DNA of 64,000 nucleotides from Pocillopora damicornis (taxonomy: Eukaryota), in assembly GCF_003704095.1 (NCBI RefSeq), contig NW_020843402.1, positions 620,001 to 684,000 of the forward strand, in the 5' to 3' direction. The stretch's first letter is position 1; each line of letters opens with the position of its first letter. The position numbers were made by a program, and so were the translations under genes. The notes beneath the pieces were generated by a model. The model searched no databases. It worked only from the letters and a program-made list of their open reading frames with translations, and was not told the DNA's origin. This document shows positions 6,101-41,007 of the stretch, one piece after another.

Positions 6101-9100
6101 GTGACGCTCCATGTCTTAATATTGGTGTAGAACTGTAGGAAAAAGTTGGTGAAAATTTTGTCACTTATAATGATTCACTTCTGTCTAAAGCGAGTCCGTT
6201 TTGCAGGAATGTTTTTGAGAGTGTTTTTTTAATCCTCTTATGATGGATGCGCTCTATTTGTTCCAGCAGCACGTTTAATTTTTGAGTTGTAGTAATTTCT
6301 TTGTCGATCGATCTATCAGAACAAGTAAGCTTCAAAATCTTGAGACAGTCTAAATGGCGTAAATATTTATCGCACATATAGTCAGGTGAAATCCACTGTC
6401 TCATTGAATCTCACAGGAGCGCACTATTTTGCTATTTTGACTCCACGCCAACAAGCCAATACCCCACGATACATCTTTGCAAATATTGTGCGTGGTCATT
6501 GGCCAAGTTTAAGTGAATTCATCCAAGTTTCACTGTACTCCTCTATTAAATTTTTAGAGGCACTACAAAACGGCTCACAACTTTGAAGGTCTAACCGACG
6601 CTGAGAAAGTCGTATTGAGACGTACTTGTCTGTAAGTGTCCCCATCAAGAATGCCGTAATTTTTCAAAAGCACTTGAGATTGAATCAAAGCAAACAATGC
6701 TCGCAGTTCGTAACTCAACTGCATGATCAAGTGATATAAAAATTTACTCTAATTGCTTCGTAAATAAGTCGAATAGCTATCCGAAGGAAGAGATGTACAT
6801 ACCAAACTCACGTTTCAGGGTTCCTTTACGGTGTGTTATTAAACTGATAGACGCACTGCGTAGCTTAACACCCTTGAATTTAAACTAACCGTTTGGGAGG
6901 GGCTTAATGATAACATAATAAGCTTGCTGTCAGGAAATTGTCGTGGTAAATGACAGCGGCATGCTCATGAAGACAGCGCTGCGGACATGTCGTTTTATTT
7001 CATTTTTTGTGATTACAATTCGCCGAAAACCCCGTGCGGAAAGTAACGCATCGACTCCGTTATTGTCTACAAATCTTCACGGCTTAATCGCTCGAATTAT
7101 TGAATTTTACGTTTAATGCAAGGAGTTATGAACGAAGAATGCCAACACGAAGTTTTAATTTAGCGCTGGCTAACGCCTGAAGGAGCACGGAAAATTATGT
7201 TAATTCCTGATTCAATAAGAAACACGATTTGAGTCACAGAAGCGGGCAAAAAAACAAATAATATTTATAAACCAAGGTATGAGATCTGAGCAAAATTTCC
7301 TTCGCGACGTTAAATGTAGTATCGACGACGTCTCTGTAATCATTTGTTACTGCAGAAGTGTTGCTTAAGAGTTTTAGGAAAGCGATTGTTTTAAACTGCG
7401 GAAACATAAATCGTTTCATGTGAACAATGAATCCTTTTAGGGTTCTCTGCCGATAAGCACGACAGTCGCCCACATCCTGCATATGTAAATACTGGTTAGC
7501 ACATCTTATTGTGTCAGTAGAAGATGTCATATTTCTACCGAAGGATTATCTTAATTCTTTTCTTAACCCAGGTCACGCAGCTAGCCTGACGTCATGCTAA
7601 ACTAGGGGCTTTAGGAAACAAACAAATAATCTAATTATGGTTAAATTACCACTTGTCTTCGAGTAGTTAGAGGCTCAAATGAGATTTCACTTTCATGCTT
7701 GAGGTGACCAACCTTCAAATTACACGGTTCAAAACATTTTGCAGAAAAAATAAAAGCATATCAGTTTTAGCAACAGCTAAATTGCACTAATTACAGAGAA
7801 GTTTGCACTTTTAACGTCTCTCGAGCTAATCGGAAATACTTTATTTTTCCTCTTCGCCCCCCCGCTTGGTATTAAGAACATCGCATTATCCGTTGATCAC
7901 GTATTGCTTGTCACTCTCTCTTAGCAGTGTATATATATCCGAGTCCTCGGTCTCTTGCATCTGTGGCAACCAAGGCGTTAGTCTTTGCGGTTACGGTTAC
8001 TGACTCACAACTCGGGCTTAAAGCCCGATGGAAATCCGTTTAATAGTTTTATTATGATCAGATTATATCCAGAGGAGGCAATAGGCTTCTATAAAAGAAT
8101 TGATTAATTTGGCTTTCACTCGATAAAATGGACCTTGCCCGTCATTCACAAAAATGCCAAGCCTCGCTTGGCCATTGAGATCGTGTCGGTAAAAGAAATC
8201 CGCTCAATCAGAATCGCGTGATCCCACTGAAGGAAGTAATTCCAAACCAATCTAACAAAGAGTACAATATAACACCTTTACATGAACCGGCTGCCGACGT
8301 TGCTCGAAGAAACTATTATAATTGAAATGCTGCGGGCAACCGAGTGAATTTGCTGCTCCACATTGAACTTACGCCCTTAAGAACATATAGCCATGCTCCA
8401 AATTTACTTTTTCACGAGGCTTAACGAATTTGAGAAATCTATGCTATAAGCGTAAGACTTACTGAGAAGGATCTTATCAAAATTTGTCATGAGGCTCACT
8501 CAAAAGTTCATGCTTAAACTTATCGTTCAGGAAGACCTTCGTTGATAAGAAACAGGCCTTGCTTTAAAATAAAAAATTTCTTTTCTTCGATAAAGCCTTT
8601 ACTAAGCTGCTAGAAGCATGGCAAACATGAAGATCTTCAAATATTGACTATATCTTGTGAAAAACCTTCTTATCAGTATTGGTAATGAATTCGAAATCAA
8701 TCTATCTAGCCACCTTATGATAATATTCTTTTTTAAGTAAGGGCTTCCACTGCTCTCGTATCCTTGCTTAGTTAGATTGATATATTCGCCTTTCTAACCA
8801 TTTGATACAGCCATTGATGTAACCGGCGTAGCGAAATATTTTCTTTTTCCGCATTGCGGCGATCCCGAAGCATAAGTCTTGGAAGAGTTACTTCTAAATA
8901 AACTCTGTTGAAGTTTCAATAGCTTGGAAACGAGCATGCTAGATATTGGTATTGCATATCTGCCTGTTTGATTGTGTTTTCAGTAAAATCATGAATTGTG
9001 TTACCAGCAAGGAGAAACTATTTTGTTGGATAATCTCTTGCTTCTTTTTCACTGCTCGCAAACAAAGGAGGTTTGAGAAGCCTTCCTCTGCTTCAACTGT

Positions 9101-12100
9101 TCAAGTGTATTTAGGCATTTCTAAGTTCGCCATCTTCAATTAATTTGTTTTAATCTTCAACTTCTGCAACCAACTTAAAAAGTATTGCTTTCTTCTTTCC
9201 TATGCGGCGTATGTCTTTCCAAGTGAGCTATTATTTGTAAATTTTCTTCTGCTGAAACACATGTCGGAAATCAAAACATCGTGAAGCAGGCTTGCTACTG
9301 AAAGGTGCCCTTCTTATAACACTACTGAGGTATCAGTGGATTTCCGGATTGAAGTTACTCTCGACAAAAATCAAAATCTAAATTTTAGGAGACACGTACA
9401 TGTACCTGTAGTAGGAAATAGCACAGGTGTTTTAAACCCCAGAGTCACTGACGTCGCTTCCTCCGTTAAGTGGTGGAGGTTTTACCTGTTAACCTTGCCG
9501 CAACAGCCTACAAATGGGCTTAACTGACCAGAAAAGGTCACCGCGTTCGTCGGTCTTCTAAGATTTCTTTTATACTTATGTCACCTTTGTTAATAAATGA
9601 TGATTGAGAAGTGATGATTTCTTTTTGTTGTCCTGGTTCATATGTACTGAGACTTAGAGATGGTTTTTTGTTTGACAACCGAGAAAATTTCAAGGAAAAA
9701 ACTCTGTATATCGAAGTAAGGAGGTTAAGCGAAATTTTAAAACTTCTCAACAATAGTGACAGTTTAATTCATTCCTTTATCTACATGTCTAGGTCCTTTT
9801 CCTAAAGTAACTGCTTTCATAGAAGATGCAATCCTTTGCGGCTATTGCAGGCCTTTCATAAAATTATCGTCCTCGATGGTCATCCCCTATGGCTGAACGC
9901 CGCGGACTATAGTTGACCCCTGAATCACAAAGTGAGCCACGTTGTTGAATTCTTTAAACATCATTGTACTCAAAGCCTAATCAAGGTTTGGGCCAAACGT
10001 ATCAATAATCATAGGAAGATTAGAACTAAATCGATTCTTCTCGCCCAAACGGAAACACAATCGATAATACAACCAGCTAAGAGGAAGACATTGGCGGCAA
10101 TCAACTATATTTACTACCAAAAGTGTGAAAGGATAATTGCTCGATGCAGAGCGAAAAAAGCAACAAAGAGTTAAATGCATCATCTTCTTTATTTCATAAC
10201 TGGGTTATTAGATCGTCTGAAGATTAGCCCCCCTAGTGATGTCGACATGTTGACAGTTACTGTCTAACCCACTGAGCTCAAACATCCCACACGATGATGG
10301 AAAATTAAACGGTTCAATTAGAACGGCACATGTCGAGAAGCACAATGCCAACTTAAGAGCTTCCGGAAGTGATAAAAGTTTAAAGGATTAAAAACCAATA
10401 ATAAAGAAATTTAATAAGGGTTTCGTGTGCACTGAAATAAACTATCAGAAGGATTGGCGACCAAAAAGTGCATCCATCGCATTTAATAGCATTCTACAAA
10501 GATTAACAGAGTGTAACTGTGTGTTTCGAGAAAGTTTATTTCGCTCGGTAGAAATTAAAGCCTCAGGTTCGGTATAAATACCTCGATGTCACATCGCTGA
10601 AAAGACGGATTTCAAGCAATTTTGATACCATATACAAAACGATTAATCCACTGTTGTTTACGGTAAGAGATCTTAGTTTGAATAAATTTTGCAAGACAGC
10701 ATTAACAACTTGATGGCGACTTTTCGCGAACTACCGACTGTGTACTTATCGTCAAACGCTTAGTTTAACATAGAATGAAACAATTTACCAGAAATGTTCC
10801 TCAAACGTTACCAGATAAATTTAGTTATGACATGAATCAAGGAATCATATTCATATGGAGTAAGCAAAAGTATTACGTATAAAACTGAGATCCTCCAAAG
10901 CACGTCATTTTCATTTCGGAAACTCAGCTTAACTGTTTACTTACCAAGCAATTAAAGAAGAAATGTTCAGCAAAATTTCTCACTTATTAATCCGTAGAAG
11001 GTTCTTAAATTCTTTGCTGGATTAAGTTGTGAGTCTATGACAAGAAAGGTAGCTAGCTAGAAAAGAGATGAACTGAGATCCAAGAAATGCTCCAGCGTTT
11101 GGGGTGCCCTGAGTCACTCGGAAGCTCTGCTTTTCCTCAACTTATGACTGCTTGGCCAGAGAGCTGTGATAAGGAAGATTCAAGGTTCCCTTCGTTACGT
11201 TTAATCTGATTTACCCAGCTTATTTTGGTTGTCTCTCAGTGGACACCGGACGGTGTGGTCGGCATGATCAAGACGAAGATCAAATATCAGTCGAGCTATT
11301 CCAGATGGATACCCTGCTTTATGCTTGAATGGTCAGTAATCTTTCGCTCACACTTTCCCACTAGCTATAGTGGACAACTTCTTTAATACTACCCAACCAA
11401 GAAGTATAGATCACAACTAGAGTCGTATTACTTTTTAAAGTCAGTTCCGCGTCGCTTCTATCGTGGTCGACTAACTTCGAGTTTAGAAATTTGCCACGGT
11501 CCTCATTTATAGTAAGCGTGGTCTGGTGAATTAGGCCAAAAATGTTCTTGAACAAAGCACATATATGTATCTTGTAGAAATGATATATTGACTGGTTTGA
11601 ATTGGTGTCGCAAAATATGTGGAAGATCGTTTCTAATGTCAGCATTTTCAAAGCAACAAACTTATCAACTTTTAATGATAAGTTATACTCTCTCTATCTT
11701 TCCCCTTTTTCCCAGTTCTTTTCCCTATCATTTTATTCCCCTCATTTTTTCGATTTCTTCTGTTTTCTTTTTTAAATTAAATAGCTTATTGTTTACCTCT
11801 TTACAAATCATAATCGATGGGAAGTACGTGATCTGTTACCAACATATCAGCCGCGTCTTGAAAATTTTGCCTTTTCTCCCGTTTATCTTCACTAAACACT
11901 AATCCCACTTCAAATTGTTTTTTTTTCTTTCTCTGTTCCTCACTCTTAGATCCTCTTAGAAAGGGACAAAAAGAAAACATACCAAAAAAGCTATTCAAAA
12001 AAGACAAAAGACAGAGCAAAAGTCAGCGAACAAAGACAAAAACGTCAAATCAAAAAGCAAAAATTGCAAATCCCATTTTACTCTTTTGTCCCTAACGGCA

Positions 12101-15100
12101 TCATGACTCTTTATGTAGTCTTTCTCCATACGCACACTCGCGTTTCTGTTTTTACCAATCCTTGCACTCGAGCAGCCACTGCATATGAAAAAATGGCTTA
12201 TTTTAGAAGTGCAGCTTCATAATTTATCTCTGAAACCAATCGCTCAAAACTTTCGCTTGAAGACAATTTTTCTGCAAAATTGAAAATTTAGGTACGAGTA
12301 GTTATATCCGGTATATACTTGTATTTACACACGTCACCATCAAATGATTATTTCGTGAATGATAGTAATAAAAATTAAGGCCTTAACTTACGATTTATTC
12401 TATTTAAGACAACAAACTCATAAACAAAACACTTAGGTTCTTTTATTTTTTTATAACTGATCGACTTATAGTGTTAGCAGTGAATGCTAAAAACATTGGG
12501 AAGTGGATCGTCGTCATAGTAACCATGATGACTGGAAGCTATTGCAAACAATTACTCTTGCCAAACATTTTCCGTTCAGCTCGCTTGTCTGTGAAAAATG
12601 TAGGCTGAAGTGAAAGGGAAAAACATAAACAACTATTTACGCCTTTAATTATCCTGTCTTTAAGAGCTTCTTTATTTCCAGTGACTTGGAATGGATCTTA
12701 TGAAACCAATTTGGTCCAGTGCTCTAGAAAGCATGGGAAATCACTTTAAAGAAAAACATTTAAAATACTTGAGGTTGTTTATCCTTTTACGTATCCTTCT
12801 CCAACTACTAGGGGCAAGACTGCTGAGAGACAACCTCGTTTGTAACACCATGCATTTGACGAGTAAACGCTTGGTTTACCTCTTCAGAACCGAATAGTAT
12901 GTTTTTCTATTAAAAGCAATGAGAATGGGTTTAGAAATAAAGTCGGTGTTGAAGAGCAAGTGAAACACAGGAGTTTCAAAAACATCTCTGCGCTTTTCTC
13001 AGGGTACCAAACAGCCAGCAATTCGTTTTTAGGAAAAAAGAAAAAGTTTTCAAGTTCCGTCTCGGAAAGCATGCGGGATCATTAAAAAAAGTACCATTTG
13101 TCAGACTACTTTCATTTTAAAATCCTTAGGAGTGCTGCTTGACAATTCTGCCCAGGCAAGAGAGAGTGAGTAGTTATATATAAAAAAATTACATAATTTG
13201 GGGGGGGTACAAAAATCCCGACACGATACGTTTATCGTGTAGTTTTATGCGAGTGAAGGCTACTGTGTTACTATCTGGAAAAAAATAGCTGTTAAGTGCT
13301 TTCATTCTTAATGGATTCTTCACTTGAATGATTCAAGTACGCTTTCAGAGAATACCAGTTTCTTTTCATTGTTTTGTTTTCAATATGATTGTTAATGCAG
13401 CGTCGTCGAGCAACGAAACCATGCCCTCAAACTAGTTTTACAAGAGGTCATGGAGGAACATTTCAAACTGACCCAGCATCACTGGCTCAATCGTGAAATA
13501 TCTTAACCGAAAAGGTAAACAACGTGGAAGACCGCCTTAAGGAAAAAAATTTCCAGATTTAGGCCTGAAAGATGAGGAAAATTGAAAACAAACGATCACT
13601 CTAACGACCAAGCCCGTTATCACGGAAATATGTTTTTGAAGGTTGTTAATTTTTCCGAGCTGCAGTACCGCTTCTAACATGTTTGCAATTCTCTTTAACT
13701 TCGTTTACGTTTACAAGCCCTACTATAACTTGCTTTTGCTTGACTTTCTTTATTTCTGATATTTTCAACGGTAAAAGTAACATGAAGGCAGCTCTTTCGT
13801 GCGGTAAATTAAAACGACAAGGTTGATTGACTTGCGGTTCATATCATACCCAACCTCTGTGGGTGGGGGTCCAAGGCGCCGTAAAAGACTTTTTTGAAAA
13901 TTACAATAGTTCATTAGCATTTAAAATAGAGTTTTGTCGTTTGCACGTAATGTGGGTTACGGACTTCGAATAAACGTGGCTGTCAAGGAAAACTCAATCA
14001 GACAACGCTTGTTTGAGAAAAAAATTTTCTTGCTGAGATTTCAAGAAGTGACAAGTACACTGTCAAAGCAGATAATGACAAAATTTTCCGCACGCCGTTT
14101 ATCATGTCAAGTTTCATATGGATAGAGGAAGCCTATCTTTCATAAATTTTCACCGTCCTACGTTTCCTTAAACGTATGGAGGTTTTTTTTAACTACCTTG
14201 ACGACACATCATCGTTATCGGGAACACTGTGGTTCCTTGTTGTGCGCTATTGTTCGTATGTGTCAATAAACGAAAAAAATGTAATATTAGGAGGATTTCA
14301 ACTTGCAAGTGATGCGTCCTTTGTGAATAATTACACCTCTTGAGTATTGAGTTAACAGCTAAATCTGGTCGGAATAAGATGGTATTACTAAACGTTACGT
14401 TTATACGTATAAATTAAGTAGTTGATTAAGAAATAAGTTCACATTTTGGTAAAGTTATGAACTACATACATAATTGACATCGGATGGTGCTTTTGAAGAC
14501 CAGGATTTACACCAGGAAAAATGCATGCACCTGAAAATCTTTAAAAATAAGGGTGTCGCTCGTTAGCTTTTTCGACGGAATATGTTCGCAGAGCATGAAA
14601 TCCGATAAATTTCGGTTTTGAATAAATATGTATATTTGTTGTTTTTCTTAACCCACCAACTATTTCAGACTCAAAGTACTTGCAAGCGGTCGAGAGTAAG
14701 GATGTTAATTGGGCCCCTTACAAACAGTATTTGTTAAAAAAATAACAATATACATTTTATCCAGATACATTAAGAGAAAAAACAACAGATGATTTTTTTC
14801 GGTTCATTTTCAAGTGACTCTTTGTATTTCAGGCAGGGTTTGGTAAGCGTCCAGTAATTAACAAGTAGCGTTTGCCGACTGAATCATCAAGCTCCGCGGA
14901 AACTTTTTTCCGGGCAAAACTCAGCTGGCTTTTAATATAACAGCTCTAAGCCTCTTGTATTATTTTGTGCATTAGATATGTAACATTTTTCTATATGTAT
15001 TCCGATAGCATTCGTCATTATCCACTTTCATATTGATGCGAAAAAAAAATTAAAGCCATCCTTCGTGTGAAATATAGAGCCGAATACTCTTGAAAATTAT

Positions 15101-17956
15101 CTTTGCAAACAAAGCAAAATAAAACCAGGGCCAAAAAACATTTCCAGATAATGTGTTTGCGTTATCCAAGCTGTTCTCTCTGATGTACTCCGTATCATGT
15201 ACATCCTGTAAAAAACATGAAAATTTTTATTTTAAAAACTATTCCCACACAAATACATTTGTACATATATTCAAACGATGAATACTTTTGTTGCGCTGAT
15301 ACATCGATATATCAGCGGAGATTTTCTGAGATGATGGTTCACTGATAGTCTAAAACTAAACGAGAAACTGACATAATAAACAACTGAGCGAAATATTGAG
15401 TATTTCTTGGTTTCAGAGAATATGGAATTGAACACAAGCGAATAGTGAGGAAACTTCGAAGTGTAATATTATCTGAGAGAAGTGGATTTTCGTGTGTTTA
15501 TTAAAAACAAGAAGAAATGCTTGCGCCTCAAATCGTCAGGAAATTTAAATATTGTTATGTATTATTGAGTTATTTTTATTTTCGTAATCACCATTAACAC
15601 CATTTGAGGTCTTGTTAAATATAAGATTGGCAAATAGTACATATATTTACTTCGTTAACCAAATTTCAACCAGTTCGGTAAAGCTTTTTTGTTTAAACAG
15701 CGATTTTTTTCTCACACCATAGGTGTTGGGTTCATTTTCAAAACTGCCTCCGGTGATTCCTATTTCCACGATGCGCATAATGGGTGATTGAAAGTGTGTG
15801 ATGAAAATGCTTATTTCCATAGTAGGACAGATGTGTATGATCACAAGCCATTGTATTTTTGCCATAGGTAGCGGAAATATAGCCGAAAACATGAAATAAT
15901 TGCCACACAATGGCGGTACTTCTGTATCGACCAACAAAGATATTAAAGGTTTTTCAAAGGAAAAGTATATTAGAAAACCTAAGAAAACCGCCTTCCAAAA
16001 AGCAATTAAAGTGAAGCCACTACAAGATTTCTTTGCAATATCTAAATTATCAGGAATCATTTGTACAAATCTTTTCCGAGTGAATCTGATACGAATAGAA
16101 AAAATATATGTATATCGCGGTTTTAGAGGCAGACAAATGAATACAATCGTTGCAAAGGTGATCAGTTTTCCGTTGATTCCTTCCTGGAAATTGCGCCGTA
16201 AATTAACCCTAAAGATGACAAGAATTGATAACTACGCGCGGACCTTGTCAACTTTTAATAAACAAAGACGAGCTCAAAACGATTCAAAAAGAAAACCTGT
16301 GTATTGAAAGATTCCGTAGTTTTGTTCTTGTGTAGCCAAGAGGAAAAGCGAGACAGGTCTTTGGTTTGTTCATTGTATATTTCAATAATGCTTGTCAAAC
16401 TTCTTGTCTCGCGCTTAAAAATATCGAGCGATTCCGTGCAAGATTCATCTCCGTAAGTTGCATGCAATTTATTTCTTGGCATAAAGACGTTTTGTTGACA
16501 ATTTACGGTGTATTTATCTTATTTCATCAGATACATCAATGTAATGGGCCTATTTAGTCGCATCCTTTCGCGTCCGGCAAACTGCGTTTTTTTATCGCTT
16601 TTTTTGACATTCATAGTCAATTGAATTTTTAAACAGCTATTTTGAAAAGAAGTCTAGCCAATTTGCATTTTCCTGTGTTCATTTTAGATGCATTTCTTGG
16701 AAAGAAAAACTTAAAATTCAAAGATAAACTGAGTTTTTTTTTTCGTAAATTTTTCGGTTTCATAGTAAAACTCAGGTGGTCATAAAAAATCCCTGGGAAC
16801 CGAAGCGCTTTCGAGCGGTCTCTTTTATGGCTGAAGACACACGTACAATGGAGCTCTCTCTTTTGTCTATGTATGTGAAAAGACTGAATTACCACACAAA
16901 GACTGCGCACAACATTTAGCCTTTTATTGACTGTGTAAACTTAAATACAGCTGAAAATTCCCAGGGCAAAACAACACGGCCTCTAGAGATTGCATTCAAA
17001 CATTGTATACTGTTCGGGTTTATGCAATTGGCGTCGTAAATTAAAAATATTATGCTCTAGTGCGTCGCGAGATTTTTCTGTTTTATGGGGGTGCACTTTT
17101 CCAAAGTGCTTGTTATGGTAACTCGGGCGTGTCTCTTGTAAACGCTTGTAAGTTGTGACTTCTCACAGCTGAGATTAAAAGGAAAGACTTATTCATTTGA
17201 GTTAGCACTTTTCAACAGTTCATCGCCTTATACAAGAATAGTTTGATATTACCTTAATAACTTAGTCAATGTACTCCGGGATTAAGACGCGAGAAATACA
17301 CGGGCCTGAGACAAAACCATTATTAGGAAACGCTTATATCTTGTATCAAACCGTTCTTAACTGAATGAGGCGATAGATTTACGCGAATTAACTTTGGAAA
17401 ATATACGCGAAGTCGTGTTCGTTTCGTCCAAAATGATTATGCGCCGAGAGTCTGCCAGGAACAATAGAAAAATTTGAATGTCGTTGAAGCGTGATCCATG
17501 AAAGTGTCTAGCAGAGACTGTTGAACAATATTACATTCTAAACTATTAGAAAAAATTTCAGGGAAATCTAACCTTCATTTATAATTTCAGAAACTTTTTA
17601 ACACTTTGCTTGTCTAAAAACTGACACGACGATCTTTTCTATAACTACTTTAAATACATTGAATCTTGTAACTAAAACCTTTAAATAAAATGTATTCAGC
17701 ATTGACTACACAACACCCGAGCTCAACTAGATTGCATCTATTAACTTCAAAAGATCGTTTTCGCTTTTTAATTACGTTTTAGTGCTAATGTCGGTTTTAA
17801 ACCTAGAATCAAACTGAAGAATCAAATCAGTTCAAACTGTTCTGCTTCTAGCAACTGCTTTTCGAACGAAAGGCATCTTTAAAAGAGTGTTTTTAAAACT
17901 TCTTTTCTCTGTGTAGTCCTTTAAGTAACTCCATTGACAGGCATTGTTTGTTAACG

Positions 17957-20566
<2,610 letters not shown>

Positions 20567-27998: not shown

Positions 27999-28008
27999 NN
28001 NNNNNNNN
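27999..28008. other. Assembly gap (10 N)
   Basis: Run of n characters next to a poly-C tract. Confidence 1.
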
Positions 28009-29446: not shown

Positions 29447-30740
29447 ATGTTTGCAAAAAAACAGAAAGTACTTCTATTCTCAGCTTTGATTGTTGCTTTG
29501 TGTATTATCAATTCTATGATAGCGAAAAAATGGATTCAAGGAGAAAAAAACAGAGTTAGAAAAATGCTGTGCTGAAGAGGAAAATATTTTGCATGATCTG
29601 TGAGACAGTGCTAACTGTAATCAGCTTCTTTTATACTGCTTGACGCACGGGGGATGGCATCAAAAAGCAGGTGTGACTAAAGAAAAGATTGACGATAGAC
29701 GAGAAGCAGACAAAGCGATTCTTGAAAACCTTGGATTTCCAAGAAAGTTTCCCAGAGAGGACAGCCGCTGTGGTCAAGTTTACCATCTTCCTTTCTCAGG
29801 TTTGGCATCACTGTGTGATGAAGAGAGTGAAACGCCATGTTGCAACGAAGGAACGGGACTCTGTGGGAATTCCAACGAGGATTGCACGTGCCCGAAATGT
29901 AGGGATTTTAATAAGTATATTGCAGGAGAGGTTGCCAAGTAGAAACCCTTATGCTCAAAGTGCCCGTATCAATCTTTTAACTGTGAAGAAGCTTGCGCTT
30001 TACTGGATGCGCATGTTTCGGAACTTGTTTTCGTTGGAGACTCATTCATTTCGACACCTTTTTGGGGCTGTCACTACTGCTTACTGGTGATCTATGGAAA
30101 GGCGCGCTAAGGAACAATCTCTCCAACATAGAAAGAGATCAGTGTAGTGGAGAACTGCAGTTTGTGGACAGAGGAAAACACTCCTGCCATCTTAAAACTA
30201 TTAAGGCTTGGGACGAATTTAGTGAAAATCAAGTGTGTGGTGGAAAGGCACAATTTAAGAGTTATTTATTTGAAGCTTACGATTTGCTCCAGCTCCCTCT
30301 CGCTGAAAAAGCCGTGACGAATCTTTTAGGAGAACCAGGGGCGATTCTCGTCCTTGGAGTTGGTATTCACATAAATTTGGGTTTAAATGCTACTAAGGTA
30401 ATTGCAAAATACCTAAGGCCTTTGCTTGCTTTGATTGAGAGTAGAGGAAATGGAAGACCATCGATAATTTGGGCGAATACACACCGATAATTTTTTAACT
30501 TCTGATAACTCAAAGAATTACGTGCCAGTTGGAAATTTCAGTCATGAAACGTCTAAGTTTTGCCGCGCAAGAAAGATTCTTGTCCTGGAGAAATCCACCG
30601 TTACTCGTTACATTAAGAGTAATGACAGGAGAAATTTTTGTTATGACGGGAACATGGAGAAGGTAGATATTTCTGAATTATTTGGAGAATCGAGATCAGA
30701 TATGTCAGCGTCCCCAAAAGTGATTTATTTCGCATTTTGA
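29447..30740 (+). pseudogene. Disrupted type II membrane protein: Cys-rich (chitin-binding type-1-like) module plus GDS/SGNH NXPE/PC-esterase-like domain
   Basis: N-terminal anchor MFAKKQKVLLFSALIVALCIINSMI; Cys module REDSRCG...CDEESETPCCNEGTGLCGNSNEDCTCPKCRDF; then AK*KPLCSKCPYQSFNCEEACALL...ELVFVGDSF. TAG at 29940-29942 sits where Trp is expected. Frameshifts occur near 29545, 30050, 30064 and 30490. The expected DxxH motif reads DRRN. Confidence 0.7.
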
Positions 30741-31022
30741 AATGAAATTGAAATGAGGTTTGAAAGGTTGAAACCTTTCGACTCGCATGATCCCCCCCGA
30801 CATCCTCGTTACCCTTTTACTGGTAAACAGGATACTATCAGCTTTTAGATTACTACCATGAAACAGTTCTATTGTTTATTTCTTCGACTCAGTTTCCACT
30901 TCCTTAGATAATGAATAATTAGCTATTAGTTTTAATTTTATTCGGATGTATCTAAACTTTGTCATATATCTGTCGTATTTTTCTCTCTGGTGAAACTCCT
31001 ATTAGGATTTAGGTAAGTAGAC

Positions 31023-34000
31023 TTATGACTTGGTCGAGGCTATGCCATAACATTTCAGTTTTCCCAAAGTATGAAAACCTTTTTCTTCTCTTGGGTCTCC
31101 TGTGTCACCAAACCGGAGCTGCGTAACGGGCAAAGTGGACTTGTCAGTCAGTAGTCCACTGTCCTCTCTCCACGTCAGATCATTGGCATCGCAGTTACAC
31201 GCTTCGCCCGTGGCGCATGAGTCGTTCATTCCACATGCGCACATGTTGCTGTCGGGGGAAGCTCCTCCCCAATACGTCATTTTCTGTCCGTCACGTGACA
31301 CCCACCAGCCGTAAGGTGATCCCCTCCAAAGAAGCACAGAATGGCGGCATTCATATTTTATGAACTGTTCACAATGGGTGGATGCCTGGATGAGGTTCTT
31401 GATCTGAGTCATAGTTGCCCCCACGTAAGTCACTTCTTGTAAATAGCTCCCTGGGTAAAAGAAGCCTTCGACGGCCGTTCTCTGCTCTGAGTTGTGACTG
31501 ATCACCGAAACCCCAACACCACCCTTATCAGTCATGTTACAAAACACTTTGAACATCGGTGAATCATCATCTGCTTTTACATTGAAAATACCACTGCGAT
31601 TATAACCTGCGAGTCTCCACTCACTGCATGATCGCACCTGGACTGTTAGGGCAGAAGTTGCATTTATGACTGCGATTTCGCTTTCTGCTGCACAGCGGTA
31701 CCATCCACCATCGAGAATAGATGTTACATTTATAATTAAAGTTCCGTTGCGCAAAATCTCGAATGCTTTTGGCATAGCGTCACCTTCCTTAGCCCATTGC
31801 ATTGGTTGTTTGCTTGCTTGGCAATGCAGTGTCACTGTGCTGCCGAGATATGCATTCATCTGCTCGACTGGTCGGATAAGAAATTTCAGTTTAGGGAGAA
31901 CGGATAACTTTGCAGACGCTTTGACTTCATTTACGTCATTTTTAGCAGTACACGTGTAGTAGTCACTATCATTAAGGGTGGCGTTGTAGATTGTCAGCTG
32001 TCCCTTAAGAGAAGTTGACCCATTTGTAAGTATGCGCCCTCTCTCGGATAGCGCTGTCCAAGTTATCACAGGCTCAGGAAATCCAGATGCTTCACATATA
32101 AACATGGCTCTCTGTCCTTCTTCGATCCGTAGTGGAAGAGGCGTCCTTGTCAGTTGAACGGGAACTGGACGAAAAAATTAAGTGAGTATAACAAGTTTAC
32201 CAATTCTAAAGTTTGTTAAGAGCCCACCTCCCCCGTCCCTCAGCTAATATGAATTCCCACGTTCCTGTTTTTGAACGTTTTAAATCACTTAGGGGTGAGA
32301 CTGGATATATAGGTAAAGCCTGAGTTAAAGTTCAGCCGGGATCAAGTTCCCTGTTGGCTCATTAGTAACTTATGGGTCCAGATCACAGCCTTCTTTTTAT
32401 TGACTTTTCCCTAAATCGAGAAAATTTAAATGTTGTACCGTGCACAATCAGTAGCATGGTCGATTTTGCGATTCCCAGCACATTCTTGGCTTGGCACACA
32501 TACATTCCAGCGTCTTCATACAGAACCCCACTGATAACCATCGTACCATTACTGTGAATCACGTGACGACCACTGGGTAAAGACCCATAGACTCGAACCC
32601 AGGTTGTTTGTGGTGAAGGAAGTCCTTTGGCTCTGCATGACAGTGAGGCTGTTTGTGTCTGTCTGATGGTTATCACTTTTGATGGTGTAATAATTGTAGG
32701 AGCAGCAACTGAAATACCAGGATCACCTTAAAAAACAATAGTGGAACATTTTGGTTTAACCCTCACGGTGTGTTGCTTTCTAACCAGCGAGAACGTGATT
32801 GATATTTTAAAACTTTTAAAATTTTAATTGTGTCGCGCATCCGATGAATTGAGAAATCAGTAAATCCTCACCAGCAATATGCGATCGTTGGGCGGAATCT
32901 TGCTATTTTCCTCTAAATAATTCGGCTACATCTTGGAGTGGTGCGTTCTTATTGCAGCCCTAAAGCTGTAGAAACTGACTGGATCAGACTTTAGATTCGC
33001 TTGGCGGCTTTCACGCAGCTGTAAGGTGCCCAGTTATTGAATAGCCTAGTGTTTATTTCTACATGCATTGAGGTCTCTAAAAGAGTAATCCTATGAACTG
33101 AAACTATCATAATCATCATCAAATTTCCATTATCATCTTCATTTTTATATTGTACTCATAGATGAAGAAGAAGGTTTCTTGTATTGAAGTAAGTCAACTG
33201 ACCTTTATCTCCTTTCGGTCCAGTCGGTCCAGCGACTCCTTTTTCCCCGCGAACTCCAGGAATTCCTTCAATGCCCACGTCACCTTTTTCCCCTTTAGGG
33301 CCCCCAAAACAAAGTCTTTCTTCTTTTGCGCAGAAAACCTGAGTTAGTGAACCCAGCACCATGCGAATTTCGTTTTTTATCTCCATTTTCATCTTTCGAT
33401 TGATACCTTTCTTGCCTTCCTGGCGTAGCTTGGATTCCTGACCCAGCCCCAGGCCTCTAGAGAATCTTCTTTGGTGATCGTTTTGTTTACTTTCTTGTAT
33501 TTCCAGGTGGTCTGAAAAGAAATCTTGCGTAATAAATAAATAACGATCGAATCTTAGAATGCTGTCAAACTGAACTGTGTCAAATTCTCAGACCATTTTT
33601 AATCTCACCTTCTTAAGTTTGTTTTCGAGTGGCCGAGAGGAGTTCGCGCGCGTCCTAAATGACCGGTTCTATGCCCACATATTTCAGAAATAGTATTTTC
33701 TCATGAAATATCTTACATTGAATTTAGCTTGGTAAAATTTCCGCACAGCCCCACACTTCATCATGCATCTAGTTCTTAGATAAAGAAGACAACAACAAAA
33801 AAAATTAAATTGCCTTTGAGACTACGACTTTATTTTAGAACAGTATGGGGCTGTGCAGAAATCTTACCCTCCATTCTAGCAAGGTCATAAATCATACATG
33901 GACAAAACAAATGAAAGACCCGGCTGACTTTGACGTATCATGCCTCGACACACTGTAAAATGACCCGAACAGGAAACGAAATGAAACAATGGCATTTTTT

Positions 34001-34914
34001 TTATCTTATTTTCTGAGTCAGTATCGAAAGAATTGTTCGAAAAACAATGAAGGCAATACATGCTTCATCTCACTCATCTCCTTGAGAGGGATTTTTTTTT
34101 TATGTGAACGCATAGGTCATAACGATCGGGGTTTATATTGAGACTTTGGATCTTCCCTAAACATGATCGCTGTTTCTGTTTTTAATATGACTGGGTGTCG
34201 ATTTAGATCACAGAAGGATTTCGTTTGAAGGGGCCATAACCACAGACAAATAGAAAACCAGTTCTTTCGAGTAGTTTAAATTACCATCGTACCACTTGTT
34301 CAAACTGAAAAACTGCAACAACCTTTAATCAAAAAAATATCTATAAAGTTGAGATGAGATACATTGATCGGTCTGATGGAATTTGGGATGTTTTCTATTA
34401 ATTTCCGGACATCATTGAAAATTTCGATGAGACCCCTAAACTGTGTGGGATAAAGTACCGCCCGAGCCTTAAGGGGACTATATTATGACAATATAGCATC
34501 TTGTACAACTGAACCTCAGTGCCGGGTTTAAACTCGACATGCGAATAAAATCCGCGTCAATCTTCCTTTACTATTCCTCAATCCTTGTTCTTTGTCATTC
34601 ATTTCTACCTCTTTAATGTACATATTTCCCCTCTAAACTGCTACTTGAAAGCCTTATTCCGTCCGCGACTGTTTAAAAAAAAAAGACTTTGGAGGCAAGT
34701 TGAAAAATCAATTGAAGAATACTTCTATGTACTTACCGCACGGTTTACATGGGCTGTCCTCTGCTTTGAGAATTTGAATCTCCAGATTTTTAATATTTTG
34801 GCGCATCAAAGACAACTCGACAGAATTTGTGTCAAGGCGAATGAGAGCTACACTTGAAAGCAACAATGCCGCCACCGCCACTGCAAGGAGGAAACCTTGA
34901 AACGCGTCGGCCAT
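31023..34914 (-). CDS. Type II TM - furin site - collagen - 3 Ig(I-set) - Caspr/neurexin-IV-type fibrinogen-like domain protein, paralogue A; exons 34914-34737, 33511-33203, 32726-32439, 32164-31023
   Basis: All three introns are GT-AG, phase 1 and in frame. TM FLLAVAVAALLLSSVALI; QRRFSR|GLG; about 12 Gly-X-Y triplets (GPKGEKGDVGIEGIPGVRGEKGVAGPTGPKGDK|GDPG); three C..W..DxGxYxC Ig domains; C-terminal RSCSEW...CEQFIKYEC...WWVSRDG..MTYWGGA...CACG..CNCDAND..REDSGLL..LPVTQLRFGD..HTLGKLKC. Confidence 0.88.
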
Positions 34915-35959
34915 TTTAATCTTAGGTTGAAGCTCTTCTCATATGGAAATGAAATACTGAGTAAAAAACAATCGCTGCATGATACTGACAAGTTCATGGC
35001 CCCAAGGAAGACGGGTATTTTTAAAGCTCTTCCTAACGAAACAAAACTCACTGCATGCCTCAAAATCGGTCATTTTAGATCGAGCTCTAAAAACCCTTAT
35101 TCTTTCGAATTGTGGCTAAGTCAGCTGGCCATTTCAAGTGAAAACGACATTCTTTTTTCCTTTATTTATGCTTTGCGGCCAAATAATTTTTTTCATATCT
35201 GAAGCTTCGTACTTACCTTAGTTTGTTTATGACAGAGAATTCTTCGCGCATCTCAGAAATCGAATCTCATGATCTACTAGGGCCCATTTTCTGGGGTTTT
35301 CACCGCGGTTTTGAAAAAACGAGTCACCCCAGTTCTTTCCTTTAGCTATTAAGAATCGAGGAGGCTTTAATGTTGTATATAGCTGAATAACATAGTGAAC
35401 AACATATTTTCATTTCATATTATTTTTGATTAACTAAGTTGGATATACCCACAGCAATGTATAACATGTATAATACTCATATGTGTGTCTTCAAATATGT
35501 TTTTATTGAAAGGGTACGTTTTACACAACGTGTATTTAATAAAGATTATACGCTTTATTAAAGAATTCAAGTGTCTAGCAATACTTAATAGTATGTCGGT
35601 ATATTGATTACCTCTTATAAAACCAAGAAAAAGCGGGTTTGGCGGTTTATGTGATCATTAGTTAAGAATTGCTACATTCTAGCCGTCTTCATTTTCTTTG
35701 AATAATTTCTTATCACTCGATTCACTTAGTCCTCGAACTAAGTTTCTGTATTTTGACTATGATATGACAAATAACTAAATCGCTATAGCTGCAGCCAGTT
35801 ACACTTGTAGGCCATCTTACATTTCGTAGCAAATCTTCAGTTTAACATAGTACTATAACGGTTTTGAATATTGACCAGGCGAGTGTCCTTGCAAAACAAT
35901 CTTCAGGGAACGTTTTGCAGTCACACCTTAGCGACCGGAATATTGAAATACCGAACGTC

Positions 35960-37451
35960 TTACTGAAAAAGTCCAAAACATTTCAGTTCCCCAAGTGTAT
36001 GAAATCCAAACTCGCGGTTAAATTTGCCAGCGTCTCCGAATCTTAGCTGAGTTACAGGTAAGGTGGCTCTGTCCGTCAACATCCCCTCGTCACGGCGAAG
36101 GACGTAGTCATTAGCATCACAGTTACAGATTCCTCCCTTAGCGCACGTGTTGTTTACTCCGCATGCACACATTGCACTTTCAGGTGGAGCTCCTCCCCAG
36201 TACTTCATCTTCTCTCCGTCGCGTGACACCCACCAGCCTACAGGCATACCTTGGTTCAGTAGCAGTGAGTTCATACAGTCGTATCGGATAAATTGTTCAC
36301 AGTGAGACGAGACATTGATCACCGATACAATCTGAGCCAATGAGGTTGTTGTGTAGTTGATATTTCTTTTGTAGCAACCTGGTGGATCACATGTGAAAGT
36401 TTGAATTCGGCCTTCACTGTCGTGACGAAAGATTGTAATTCCGACGCCATTTTTATCCTCCATGTCGCAGAGCGCTTGAAACGCAGGAACTGGACCCTCA
36501 ATATCTGGATCAATCCGGTACTCTGCACTTTCTGTGTAACCAAGCTTTCTCCATTCAGTACAAGTTCGGACCAGTACGTCCACTTCCACTTCAATTTCAA
36601 TAGAAGTGATGATATTTTTCGCAATGCACTCATAAGAACCAGTGGCGTCAAAAGATGCGTTAGCGATGAACAAAGTTCCATTTTCATCTAAACGAGACCC
36701 AGAAGGTAAACCGCCAGATGTCTTCGACCACGTGACAACAGGAATGAATTCTCCACTGTCTGCTACGCATGTCAAAACTACGTCATCGCCAACATGAACC
36801 TTCGTCTTTTTCTTTGGAACAATAACAAATTTCAAACGAGGAACTACAGTCACTCCCAGAATAACGACGACTTCGTTAAAGATGTTTTCAGCCAGACATG
36901 TGTAGAAGCCGCTGTCTTCAAGCTCAATTTTGTTAAATCTTAATTCTCCTTCATTTAGAAACGTTTCCCAGGCGGAGGGGGCACCGGAAGTTTTATTCCA
37001 TGTGATCTTCGGCTCAGGTCTTCCAAATACAGGACAGCGGAGTGTCAATTCGCTTTCCTCTTCTACGAACGTATGGGGCGAATGGTCTAAGATGCGAACG
37101 GGAACTACAGATAACAAACAAACATAAAAAAGAATAGTAAGCAAACAAATAGACTGGAACGATAACACCTCGCAAAAAACTGAAATGAAAGTAAGAAGAA
37201 GATCTGAATCAGTGGATCGTGCTTGGTTCGTAATCCTATACAGGACAGGTCATTGTTAATTACTTTGGAGAGGGGTGGGGGTGGAGGAGGTCGCTCTATA
37301 ATTATTATGCATATGATCCCCGCCTTCATGCTTTGATGGCGATGAATGATCCCCCCCCACCTTGTGATTTCCCCCCCCCCAAAATCAACAAAGCCGTTTT
37401 TCTGGTATTCAGGGCTGACTTTTTTCGGATTAAGGGGGGGTAAGTTTCTGA

Positions 37452-37484
<33 letters not shown>

Positions 37485-39498
37485 TATAACAGGGTAATTT
37501 AGTATTATTAATTGAGTTGATAATGTAAATTGGCCACCGTGAAGAGTTCGCTCTGACGAGGGGCTTACGCTCTAAACGTCAGTTTTTAACCTCTTTACAG
37601 TGGCCAATTTACGTTATCAAATCAATTGATAATACTAAATTACCCTTTTTCGGATTACCCGGTCACCTAAATTGTTTGACTTAATTACCGATCTATGTTC
37701 CATAACTACATCTTACCTAACACAGTTAAGTTTGCCTTCGCTTCCACCTCACCAACAAAGTTCAACGCTTTGCAAACGTAGGTACCTTGATCACTGGGGA
37801 CAGCGTCCATTATCATTAAGGAGCCGTCAATCAAAGTAAAACTCCTCTCGTTCTGCAGTTGGCCGCCTTCTCGACTCCAGATTATATCAGGCCTCGGCAT
37901 TCCACCGGTCATGCAGAGAATGGAGGCGGTGTCATTCTCTCTCACTGTTACAGGCTGTGGTTTTACAATAAAAGCTGGCATGGAGGGCGTCAAAAGTCCA
38001 TCAGCACCGGCCCCTAGGGTAAAAAATCATAGACGTGACTTTGTCCGAAATCCATCTAGATAAAATTTGATTCACCTGCCGTCCTTGAAACTAGTTTAAT
38101 TGGATGAATCTAAATAACGCTGAATAAAAAAAAACTGTAACTGTTTCACGGTAAGATCTGGGTACGAGATTAACCTCGGCTTACCTGAGTCACCTTTTTC
38201 TCCTTTTACCCCCGGCTGCCCGGTATCCCCCTTTTGTCCCTGGGGGCCCCGTTCTCCAGCTGGTCCCCTATCACCTTTAGGTCCTACGGGTCCTTGAACA
38301 CAAATGTTTTCGTCATTTACACAGATCTTGTTCTCAAGAAGGGAGCGCAGTTGATTTTCTGTGAACTTCTGTACACATGCTATCAATTTCTGACTGCACT
38401 CCAAGTCATGCTCAATAACATCATCGTTGTCCCTCTTGGCTCTACGAGCGTTTGTTTCATCCAGATCTGAAGCGTTCGAATGGTTCAGTATTAGGTACTG
38501 TTATTGAATATCTTAATAGTTCATACTATCTCATAGCTAAAAACAGATGAGCGCTAAATTGGGACAAGTTCATTTTCAAAGTCGACTGTTGACGATCACA
38601 TAGGAGTAGTCGAAATGATCGCTACTGTAAATCCTGGCAGCACTTTTTCTTCTACGGAACAACAGAAGGGGATTGTTTTACAGTACAATTTAGTTCCGGA
38701 GGTACTCAAAAGAAAGCTGAATGCCAGCTCTAGTTGACGAGAGTCACTGTAATAACTTTGAATGGGCGTGGCTCATACAGTGTCGGAGGAGAACAATAAT
38801 ACCTTTCGGACATTTTATATGGGACCTTTTTTTGAGGAGGATCCTTCTCGAGAGGAACAACAGTACCGTGCACCTCTAAGCTGTTTACAAAATCTCGTTA
38901 AGAGAACAACTGAGGAGCAATTATTTCAAGGTTTATCTATTTGTTGTTTATTTTCGTTTAATGAAATCTGTAGCGATGCCAATGTCCACCTCTCCTCCTT
39001 TTGGTCTCTTCCTACTTTGTCAAAAACGACCTGCACACTAAATTTTACTGCGGTATTCATAATCCTATTATTAGGCAGATAAAAACTTCCGAACTTATCA
39101 CGTGCAGTGCATTCAACTTCTGTTTTTGAGTGTCCTGATTGCCAATTGATGAAATGAAAATAACAGGTGTGACGAAAATGACAGTTATGACGAGAAACTC
39201 CAAGTTAACATAAACGACAAAAAATAACGGAAGGGGAAAGTAACATTGAATAAAAACAAAAAGAGAGAGAGAGCTCTACAACTGGATTTTGTATAGAGTG
39301 AAATTAGAGGAGGAGCCGTTTGAAGCTAGCGAAGCCAACAGCAAAGTGGTTATGAAAACAATACCTACATGGTTTAGCTGCGTGTTCCAGTGTTTCTACC
39401 CGCCGCTGCAGTCGTCGATGCTCGTGTGACAGCAGAAAACACAACAGAAAGCAAATTGTGAGAGCTGCGAAGGATAAATATGTTCCTGTTTTAGACAT
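35960..39498 (-). CDS. Type II TM - furin site - collagen - 3 Ig - Caspr-type fibrinogen-like domain protein, paralogue B; exons 39498-~39369, ~38466-38185, 38013-37717, 37104-35960
   Basis: Same exon and domain layout as paralogue A. TM YLSFAALTICFLLCFLL; NARRAKR|DND; collagen GPVGPKGDRGPAGERGPQGQKGDTGQPGVKGEKGDS|GAG; three Ig domains; same C-terminal domain. The exact exon 1/2 junction is uncertain. Confidence 0.86.
37433..37645 (+). mobile_element. Small palindromic element with a degenerate minimal type-I hammerhead ribozyme core (Penelope-like/retrozyme-derived), in the last intron of paralogue B
   Basis: About 55-60-bp inverted arms (agggtaatttagtattat...aaattggccac at 37491- and gtggccaattt...ataatactaaattaccct ending 37646) around CTGACGA-g-GGGC-ttac-GCTC-tAAAC-GTC-ag (37553-37582). 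Flanked by the 12-bp direct repeat tttttcggatta (37421-37432, 37646-37657). Confidence 0.65.
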
Positions 39499-40059
39499 AC
39501 TTATTTCTGAAGGAGTGATTCGTGTTCCAAGGCCTGTTTTTGAGCTCTAGTTGGATATTAATGTAATAAGTTTGGTCTTTCAAGGTGCTTATTCACGTCA
39601 ATGCTGAGATTTTTCATTACTTTTGGGGCGTATTTGGAAATGTACCAGCAACCAGATTAGAGAGTAATAACAGCTGATCTGTCACTCATGCCCTCGGGTA
39701 ACAAGCTTATCAAATTTTTCATAGGGGCCGATTGCACTGCGCCAGAAGATACTGGAGATCGTTTTTCAGATAATATTAAACATCAAAGAGGCCGATATCT
39801 TGCCCTCAAATAAGAAACAATTATCGATTGTTTTTTTCCTAATTTAGTGTGCAATATGTCCTTATCGCTCACCAACGTGCAATTTGCTAAATTTTCCGAA
39901 AAGCACGACATACAACGTAAGTGTGATCAAAAAAATAACTCTCATCATTAACAACCATTTGGTTAAATTAAAGTAATCGAACTTGATAGTTTAATTGATT
40001 TTCAACTCAACCTCTCTCAATAATCCCCGCCTATTGCCTTTGGGATCTCACGCAACCAG

Positions 40060-40889
40060 GATCCTGTCTAAAGTACACAGGAGTGACCACGAGTGACCAC
40101 GAATGACCATGATTGACCACGAATGACCACGAATGACCACGAATGACCACGAGTGATGAAAGTTTTAAAAAGTTAATCATTATCTAAAATAAAGATAATA
40201 ATAAGAAGAAAAATATTACAGACAATTTAATGGGAAATATCAAAGGAAAACAACTTTAGCCCTTATTTATTAAAAACCCCGAATAAAAGGAGAAAAGTTA
40301 AATTCTCTGATTTTTCCGTTTTTGGAATCATTTATCGACTTTGTGCATGACACGTGATTTTATTGTAAGTTTTTATGAAAGCTTATAAGTCAAGTCTAGT
40401 TTTCAACTCTTCATTCATAGTTTGACCTATAGGTCGTCGACTGAAGTAACGCAATCTTATCGTTTAGCCGCAATAAATAACTTTTGAAAATGCTTTAAGT
40501 ATATATCTATTAATAAAATTAATATATTAATTATCTTAAATATATTTTTGTTTTAAATAGTCATTCAGAAAGCTTAAAATCCTTTTTTTGGTTGTCTAAA
40601 TCAGCGATGCAGAATGACAGATCGGTGTCATTGTGTAAATAAACAAGCAAATAATAACGGAAACATCAGGGCATTTAACTTTTTTTCCTTTTATTCGGGG
40701 TTTTTAATGAATGAGGGCTACAGTTCTTTTTTCTTTAATATTTCTCATTAAATTCACTGTAATATCTTTTTTCTTATTATCATTTTTATTTTAGTTAATG
40801 ATTAACTTTTTTTAAATTTTTCCACTCGTGGTCATTCGTGGTCATTCGTAGTCACCCGTGGTTACTCGTGTGTACTTTTAGACATGATC
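40060..40889. mobile_element. Non-autonomous Mutator/Foldback-type MITE (830 bp)
   Basis: Termini gatcctgtctaaa...tttagacatgatc; imperfect TIRs of roughly 230-240 bp with 10-bp (gaatgaccac)n subrepeats; perfect 9-bp TSD cgcaaccag at 40051-40059 and 40890-40898; no ORF. Confidence 0.9.
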
Positions 40890-41007
40890 CGCAACCAGTG
40901 AAACCTTGAAGAGCAAGACATCGGTTGACATTTGATAGCAGTTGATAGCCTCTTGCATTTTGTACACACAGAGGGAGGGGTGGTGCTGAGGAGGAAACAC
41001 TATCATC

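Follow-up and report, generated by a model that had tools for sequence, protein, structure and literature searches.

Two tandem CniFL genes of Pocillopora damicornis with a Caspr-type head of predicted C-propeptide fold: candidate shed, trimeric ligands

Two adjacent genes, here called A and B, occupy positions 31023-34914 and 35960-39498 on the minus strand of a 64,000-nucleotide stretch of Pocillopora damicornis DNA (RefSeq assembly GCF_003704095.1, contig NW_020843402.1, positions 620,001 to 684,000), referred to below as the window. On balance, the evidence favours their being tandem members of the anthozoan CniFL (cnidarian ficolin-like) family, within a sub-clade whose Caspr-type head is predicted to have the COLFI fold, and encoding proteins that are shed as trimers. 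To judge from sequence, the products are most likely shed, trimeric adhesion or matrix ligands, and not complement activators of the ficolin type. The same order of domains is found in both: an N-terminal hydrophobic segment, heptads, a basic convertase motif, further heptads with a C-x6-C motif, 13 Gly-X-Y triplets, three I-set Ig domains and a C-terminal head. From the cleavage motif to the Caspr-type head, this order had been proposed in a first-pass annotation made from the sequence letters, and was confirmed by Pfam searches and motif inspection; taken as a whole, the interpretation given there is partly supported.

CniFLs were first reported in the Aiptasia genome paper (Baumgarten 2015, cited via PMC5094078), and were later defined by the presence of collagen, Ig and fibrinogen Pfam domains (van der Burg et al. 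2016, PMC5094078). According to the CniFL passages of the latter, most of them carry one transmembrane domain (TMD) and three Ig domains. A and B have the collagen repeat, with 13 uninterrupted triplets each, and three Ig-clan domains per gene between collagen and head. Their Fibrinogen_C matches fall below the Pfam cutoff, yet the same head motifs are present in published CniFLs, and membership therefore holds by direct comparison. The trimmed alignment of Additional file 5 of PMC5094078 contains two kinds of head: most sequences carry the canonical fibrinogen-related motifs 'YCDM TTDGGY ... GAWW', and a clade formed by Adi_CniFL1, Ap_CniFL1-3 and Cp_CniFL3 carries 'VFCNM/VYCDM TDKGG' and 'GWWVSRDG...', which are the motifs of gene A. 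Identity to gene A extends to 'VFCNM TDKGG', 'GWWVSRDGQKM' and 'CNCDANDLTW', the last in Adi_CniFL1, which also has in common with A an Ig1 motif around 'AGMYVCQA' and looks orthologous to it. The two genes had been suspected to represent an undescribed cnidarian family. This suggestion falls, because CniFLs, with the motifs of gene A in their alignment, have been published with a TMD in front of the same combination of collagen, three Ig domains and fibrinogen-like head; as far as description goes, the architecture was already characterised. A and B resemble the CniFLs also in being anthozoan and multi-copy, and in carrying a fibrinogen-superfamily head at the C-terminus; they differ by an unusually short collagen, devoid of the PGKHGP motif described below, while the published family mixes the two head types.

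Each gene gave three I-set/Ig_3 Pfam matches, the first lying in exon 3 and the other two in exon 4, with E-values from 1e-14 to 1e-27 (1e-23 to 1e-24, by both I-set and Ig_3, for Ig2 and Ig3 of gene A). The head which follows them is Cys-rich and about 200 aa long (203 aa in A). On the two heads, Pfam Fibrinogen_C (PF00147) scored 18.4 and 16.8 bits, against a cutoff of 22, aligning the first 46-56 head residues only with profile positions 3-47 of 221, and COLFI, whose cutoff is 26.2, reached 12.4 and 15.4 bits over profile positions 61-225 of 233; two relatives, P0021 and P0131, exceed the COLFI cutoff. PDB searches, run both with the single sequence and with a profile, matched fibrinogen, angiopoietin and procollagen chains over the first 50-60 head residues only, fibrinogen and procollagen being about equal in the profile search, within the first subdomain; no Caspr chain in PDB was matched by either search.

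An exhaustive search with the head of A returned at least 2004 representative proteins (50% clustering, E <= 1e-3). P0243 (1276 aa) and P0260 (1303 aa) matched head residues 1-198 and 29-200, with 44% and 51% identity and E-values of 5e-41 and 9e-39. Both are built as F5/8C - LamG - LamG - EGF - head - LamG, which is the architecture of Caspr/neurexin IV, and by this homology the head is of the Caspr type, as the first-pass annotation had stated. In other contexts, a chain holds 2-7 copies of the module next to EGF/VWD, or the module follows 22 cadherin or 27 TSP1 repeats, or it stands together with C-type lectin, PAN or Xlink-CUB-SRCR domains. In the last group (P0052, P0122, P0124, P0228), Xlink, CUB and SRCR are followed by two head copies; a newt (Lissotriton) fragment of this group carries the name 'neurexin-4-like', and the module is therefore used in vertebrates outside Caspr too. 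P0257 is composed of a classical signal peptide, a short collagen, a neck and the same head type. In the genome of Pocillopora damicornis, the head has no fewer than 57 matches, mostly in tandem clusters (contigs C781, C3382, C1291, C906 and C2862); many have open frames of 380-450 aa, of the Ig-Ig-head exon type, and several contain in-frame stops.

The fold of the head was analyzed on an AlphaFold2 (AF2) model of the head of A, based on an alignment of 45 sequences (pLDDT 97, pTM 0.91). The top Foldseek matches were the C-propeptides of procollagens III and I (E 7e-9, TM-score about 0.6, about 230 columns), as compared with about 125 columns and TM-scores of 0.27-0.30 for canonical fibrinogen-related domains. 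Alignment by VIA-align to the procollagen C-propeptide (PDB 5k31, 4ae2) gave a Z of 15.6, with a root-mean-square deviation of 3.6 over 176 residues and 18% identity, and Z values were 6.0 for fibrinogen gamma, 5.0-5.3 for ficolins (104-117 residues) and 4.9 for FIBCD1. As modelled, the head fits a procollagen C-propeptide (COLFI) far better than the lectin head of ficolins.

The C-propeptide, the best structural match, is also located C-terminal to a collagen helix. A and B differ from fibrillar procollagens in the sub-threshold COLFI score, in the lack of a coiled-coil stalk directly before the head, in the three Ig domains interposed between helix and head, and in the number of triplets, 13 against about 340. 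With respect to Caspr/CNTNAP/neurexin IV, the head is homologous over its full length to the domain located between EGF and LamG in the F5/8C-LamG proteins. Discoidin, LamG and EGF gave no Pfam match in any exon of A or B, and the type I topology of Caspr is also missing; the likeness is that of a common module, not of family membership. A limited literature text search found no paper linking the fibrinogen-like domain of Caspr to COLFI.

At the other end of the proteins, the highest Kyte-Doolittle mean over 19 residues, reached directly behind the start codon, is 2.6 for A and 2.1 for B. Both hydrophobic segments are kept in the first exons of the corresponding genes of another coral (L002), and the charge difference between the flanks is, in gene B, compatible with an N-in orientation. 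The N-glycosylation sequons, 18 in the two proteins together, all lie C-terminal to the collagen, in exons 3-4. A furin motif had been annotated in both genes: RRAKR of gene B is indeed a full furin consensus, while RRFSR of gene A only corresponds to the minimal R-x-x-R. The latter is RRFSR in Stylophora and RRFAR in L002, where RRAKR of B is replaced by RHRARR. Among 15 paralogue models in which the upstream region is included, R-x-[KR]-R is found about 45 residues before the collagen in 13, and a Cys pair just before the collagen in all; these 15 models begin at an internal Met and the anchor is missing. Sequence comparison indicates conservation of the convertase site in orthologues as well as in paralogues.

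A C-x6-C pair stands directly before the collagen; A has one such pair in all, and B two. Exon 1 of gene A contains an additional pair, CKPC. It has no counterpart in B, whose exon 1 stops behind ...AAKP, in phase 1, without having reached a Cys. A basic tail in front of the hydrophobic segment is seen in two relatives. In the single model P0197, a basic tail precedes a transmembrane segment and a long coiled coil; RRRR comes next, then collagen and three Ig domains, and the head is last. In an Oculina paralogue, a basic tail and 21 hydrophobic residues are encoded immediately before the annotated start, but in a different frame. The public start of this paralogue (P0063; Oculina patagonica, L001:9400-10260) misses that stretch, and the model is probably without its anchor.

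The collagen run was scored by Pfam (PF01391) at 31.1 bits in B and 26.9 bits in A, the cutoff being 27.2. Counted over the exon 2/3 junction, the uninterrupted Gly-X-Y triplets are 13 in A and 13 in B; the short run described by the first-pass annotation is thus confirmed, with a slightly higher count than the 12 or so reported there. Other CniFLs have stalks of 19-27 triplets. In collectins, ficolins and C1q, the motif Hyp-Gly-Lys-Xaa-Gly-Pro (O-G-K-X-G-P) holds the proteases MASP, C1r and C1s. A sequence which fits this type of pattern, PGKHGP, is present in 15 of the 15 long-collagen paralogue models (among P0032-P0111), with TGKHGP in one of them. The collagen of A and B contains no G-K-x-G-[PYN], and none of the 13 triplets has a Lys at the X position; the Stylophora model P0002 similarly has neither PGKHGP nor any X-position Lys. 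The MASP-type motif appears to have been lost in the short-stalk branch holding A and B. As A and B are devoid of the Lys-in-X-position motif that holds MASPs, it is unlikely that the lectin complement pathway is set off by A and B themselves.

Shed type II membrane collagens and colmedins (gliomedin, collagens XIII, XVII, XXIII and XXV, ectodysplasin A) are composed of an anchor, a juxtamembrane coiled coil, a furin-type site, a collagen and a C-terminal head. A and B are analogous to them in the predicted anchor, the heptads, the collagen and the C-terminal head, and in the putative furin-type site, located in both between the hydrophobic segment and the collagen; the resemblance pointed out by the first-pass annotation is upheld at this level of analogy. 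Differences are found in the head, which is neither olfactomedin nor TNF-like, and in the cytoplasmic tails, which are almost absent. Pfam gave no olfactomedin (OLF) match in A or B, and there is a single short collagen run, so that both the olfactomedin head of colmedins and the multiple interrupted collagen domains of MACITs are lacking; no sequence homology to these proteins was seen outside the collagen and Ig regions.

The mechanism proposed for A and B is as follows. The hydrophobic N-terminal segment would act as a type II signal anchor, and the heptads, the cysteine pair and the short triple helix would lead to a disulfide-bonded homotrimer. A furin-type convertase would cut between anchor and collagen, giving rise to a soluble three-armed molecule, each arm carrying three Ig domains and one head. 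Acetylated sugars would be a less likely ligand of the head than a protein or a matrix component, because this head type is found as a single copy in Caspr and in tandem elsewhere, and lacks most of the canonical fibrinogen-related domain. No MASP would be recruited by either protein.

Several points weigh against this picture. Trimerisation, shedding and ligand type are all deduced from sequence features, and the fold comparison depends on a predicted model; a homotrimer prediction for the 203-aa head (score 0.00, run without controls) speaks neither for nor against. Published CniFL transcripts, in data in which the head types are unseparated, are tied to immune challenge (PMC7654579) and symbiotic state, which fits a recognition role. 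The basic motif of gene A is weak, and the N-terminal tails are merely 4 (A) and 7 (B) residues long, with at most one Lys. In addition, a 12-residue core in gene A is followed by S-V-A, a plausible context for cleavage.

The last two features lead to the main rival, simple secretion, by which A and B would be ordinary secreted proteins, with a cleaved signal peptide and a short N-propeptide trimmed by the convertase, and with no membrane stage. Because the tails are so short, and nearly uncharged, this explanation retains some weight, although it is rather unlikely. The relative P0257 also combines a classical signal peptide with collagen and the same head. Signal peptides are often scored as transmembrane helices by TMHMM. 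The TMD calls for CniFLs were made by TMHMM alone, as described in the corresponding part of PMC5094078. Secretion is opposed by the length of the uncharged stretches, 21-22 residues, which exceeds that of typical signal-peptide cores, and by P0197 and the Oculina paralogue, whose basic tails and 21-23 hydrophobic residues are textbook type II anchors. The presence of a conserved convertase site just outside the membrane, moreover, corresponds to the layout of shed type II collagens, and the flank charges of B are compatible with the N-in orientation.

A and B could alternatively be pattern-recognition receptors of the ficolin kind, with a head for microbial or symbiont glycans and a stalk that recruits MASP, thus triggering the lectin pathway. 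Ficolins (L-, M- and H-ficolin, tachylectin 5A) have in common with A and B a Cys-rich N-terminus, a collagen stalk, a fibrinogen-superfamily head and expected trimers. The name of the family and the hypothesis of Baumgarten 2015 (via PMC5094078) speak for such a role, as does the PGKHGP motif of the long-collagen paralogues; according to the CniFL passages of an Exaiptasia infection study (PMC7654579), CniFL transcripts go up with lectin-pathway genes after Vibrio challenge. In published transcript data, aposymbiotic anemones express CniFLs more strongly than symbiotic ones. Ficolins, however, are secreted, have no Ig domains, and their head, which contains an acetyl-binding site, comprises the A, B and P subdomains of a complete fibrinogen-related fold. 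In the heads of A and B, by contrast, the Fibrinogen_C match covers the first 50 residues or so, the model aligns with ficolins at a Z of about 5 as against 15.6 for C-propeptides, and the stalk has neither the O-G-K-X-G-P motif nor a Lys in the X position of its 13 triplets. Both binding by any CniFL and complement activation were, in the same passages of PMC7654579, still to be demonstrated. The ficolin/complement hypothesis is possible for paralogues bearing a canonical head or PGKHGP; for A and B it fits poorly, and is held to be improbable.

The shed-ligand interpretation requires that all the exons belong to one transcript. The coordinates and the common four-exon layout given by the first-pass annotation proved right, by exon mapping and, for B, by RNA: position 31023 is the final base of the stop codon of gene A, and 39498 is the A of the ATG of gene B. 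The genes have about 638 (A) and 617 (B) codons, as established by arithmetic closure of the frame; all exon frames are open, and the six introns are all GT..AG and all in phase 1. Database searches were queried with single exons, or exon parts, of A and B. RNA contigs from three runs (X1, X2 and X5), belonging to two studies, were mapped over 33450-39449. For gene B, single contigs of 2.1-2.5 kb link exons 4-3-2-1 in each of the three runs, with joints at 37104/37717, 38013/38185 (the joint reads 38012/38184, cut +1) and 38466/39369, the last of which, the exon 1/2 joint, is found in X1, X2 and X5. In the 3' untranslated region (UTR) of gene B, contigs start at 35489 (X1, record 4) and 35542 (X2, record 7). 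A phase-2 donor for exon 1 of gene B, AG/GTATTG, was considered and rejected, as the RNA contigs use CAT/GTAGGT, in phase 1.

Gene B is transcribed and spliced as four exons. Since single contigs join all of them, the case in which the transmembrane and collagen exons are not spliced to the Ig-head exon, which had been indicated as fatal to the first-pass interpretation, does not apply to B. Gene A is transcribed as well, with probable four-exon splicing: its exon 1/2 joint, 34737/33511, was found in RNA of X1 and X2, and the exon 2/3 and 3/4 junctions are based on GT-AG sites, on the frame and on the 89%-identical Stylophora model P0002, which joins the same four exons. The view that A and B are gene-model artefacts or pseudogenes, with anchor and collagen exons outside the Ig-head transcripts, could appeal to the many public models of relatives in which the start is placed at an internal Met or within the collagen, and to the many genomic head copies with stop codons, but it is refuted already for B by the contigs and is extremely improbable overall, given the exon 1/2 joint of A in RNA, the open frames with GT-AG phase 1 introns, and orthologues 70-90% identical in conserved order.

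The closest matches of the window genes are Logan contigs (98%) and Stylophora (89%), in keeping with a pocilloporid coral. The Stylophora pistillata model P0002 (609 aa) is the one 89% identical to A; exon 2 of A is aligned to its residues 25-134, and exon 3 is 90.5% identical to residues 135-229. This model is publicly named 'contactin-associated protein-like 2', which bears out the label that automated pipelines had been expected to assign, and paralogues are named 'roundabout homolog 3-like'. By tblastn with P0002, A and B are the only copies in the window. Their identity, 42% in exon 4 and 53% in the head, marks them as old, anciently diverged paralogues. A word search gave 2825 matches, the full-length relatives being 610-640 aa long, with collagen, three Ig domains and the same head. 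In the Atlas, the neighbours of P0197 are cnidarian clusters of the collagen+Ig type and, weakly (score 0.78), an arthropod cluster with Ig+OLF; no others were returned.

In L002, a thyroglobulin-1 gene (domain at 1973-2281), a B-type gene (81% identical; first exon at 7412-7534) and an A-type gene (70% identical) follow one another in the same order, and the orthologous first exons of the A- and B-type genes are conserved. A Kunitz/thyroglobulin-1 gene is located at 42158-44860 of the window, in a position relative to B that matches L002; the three-gene order (Tg1, B-type, A-type) appears to be conserved in this other coral. In Oculina patagonica (L001), a retrotransposon (RVT_1, integrase) lies between two family members. 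A possible link to the coral skeleton was dropped, as the core skeletal matrix protein 'Neurexin (contactin-associated protein)' is a laminin-G protein, not of the CniFL type.

The features of the two genes are collected in Table 1.

Table 1. Exons, motifs and domains of genes A and B, in window coordinates.
Feature	Position	Strand	Content
Gene A, exon 1, coding part	34737..34914	-	Met, 4-residue tail, uncharged 21-22 residues (~34840-34902), heptad-like stretch, CKPC; ends in phase 1
Gene A, exon 2	33203..33511	-	RRFSR (33456-33470), heptad-like stretch, C-x6-C (33309-33332), G-X-Y run (33204-33302) continuing into exon 3
Gene A, exon 3	32439..32726	-	final two collagen triplets, Ig1 (I-set, Pfam E 1.9e-14)
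Gene A, exon 4	31023..32164	-	Ig2, Ig3, 203-aa head (31026-31634), stop codon (31023-31025)
Gene B, exon 1, coding part	39369..39498	-	MSKTGTY, 16-17 hydrophobic residues, basic and heptad-like stretch; ends in phase 1 after ...AAKP
Gene B, exon 2	38185..38466	-	RRAKR (RAKR 38432-38443), coiled-coil-like stretch, collagen run (38186-38293)
Gene B, exon 2, two C-x6-C pairs within coiled-coil-like stretch	38375-38398 and 38300-38323	-	
Gene B, exon 3	37717..38013	-	end of collagen run, Ig1 (I-set, Pfam E 4.7e-18)
Gene B, exon 4, coding part	35960..37104	-	Ig2, Ig3, head (35963-36568), stop codon (35960-35962)
Gene B, 3' UTR	35489..35959	-	extent given by the reach of RNA contigs

Intron 3 of gene B contains, at 37485-37650, an element of about 165 bp with terminal inverted repeats ('CAGGGTAATTTAGTATTATTAATTGA...', mirrored at the far end), which looks like a miniature inverted-repeat transposable element (MITE). 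RNA contigs cover it to a depth of about 5,000-20,000 and show many loose ends; copies of the element are therefore abundant in transcripts from many loci. Within intron 1 of gene A, a depth of 80-165 is reached at 33650-33849, in an otherwise silent intron; this stretch is probably another repeat. An Rfam scan of 30000-41000 gave no match, and 10 consecutive N, an assembly gap or a mask, occupy positions 27999-28008.

Beyond the two genes, a wider proposal may tentatively be put forward, namely that the CniFL clade with this head is mislabelled 'ficolin-like'. Its members would be the cnidarian counterparts of gliomedin and the colmedins, that is, type II anchored, convertase-shed trimeric ligands; the head would be a stand-alone COLFI-fold module common to Caspr, forming a large family without a Pfam model of its own and bridging C-propeptides and fibrinogen-related domains; and A and B would represent a short-stalk, MASP-independent, cell-cell/cell-matrix branch. 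Three points are new with respect to published work: the head with its predicted C-propeptide/Caspr-type fold, the conservation of the convertase site, and the apparent loss of the MASP-type motif in the short-stalk branch. The CniFL passages of PMC5094078 and PMC7654579 mention neither the convertase site nor a COLFI-like fold of the head.

CniFLs are repeatedly cited, in the literature passages considered here, as candidate receptors for microbes and coral algal symbionts, by analogy with ficolins. If one whole clade has a C-propeptide/Caspr-type head and no MASP-type motif, expression studies in which 'CniFLs' are pooled mix two functionally different kinds of protein, and the lectin-pathway hypothesis would be apt only for the right CniFLs. 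As the convertase site is conserved, the active form is predicted to be a released trimer, and the place to look for it would be the mucus or the mesoglea, not the cell surface. The head is a widespread metazoan extracellular module, detected weakly by Pfam models; if it had a model of its own, many invertebrate genes now labelled 'contactin-associated protein-like' would be annotated correctly.

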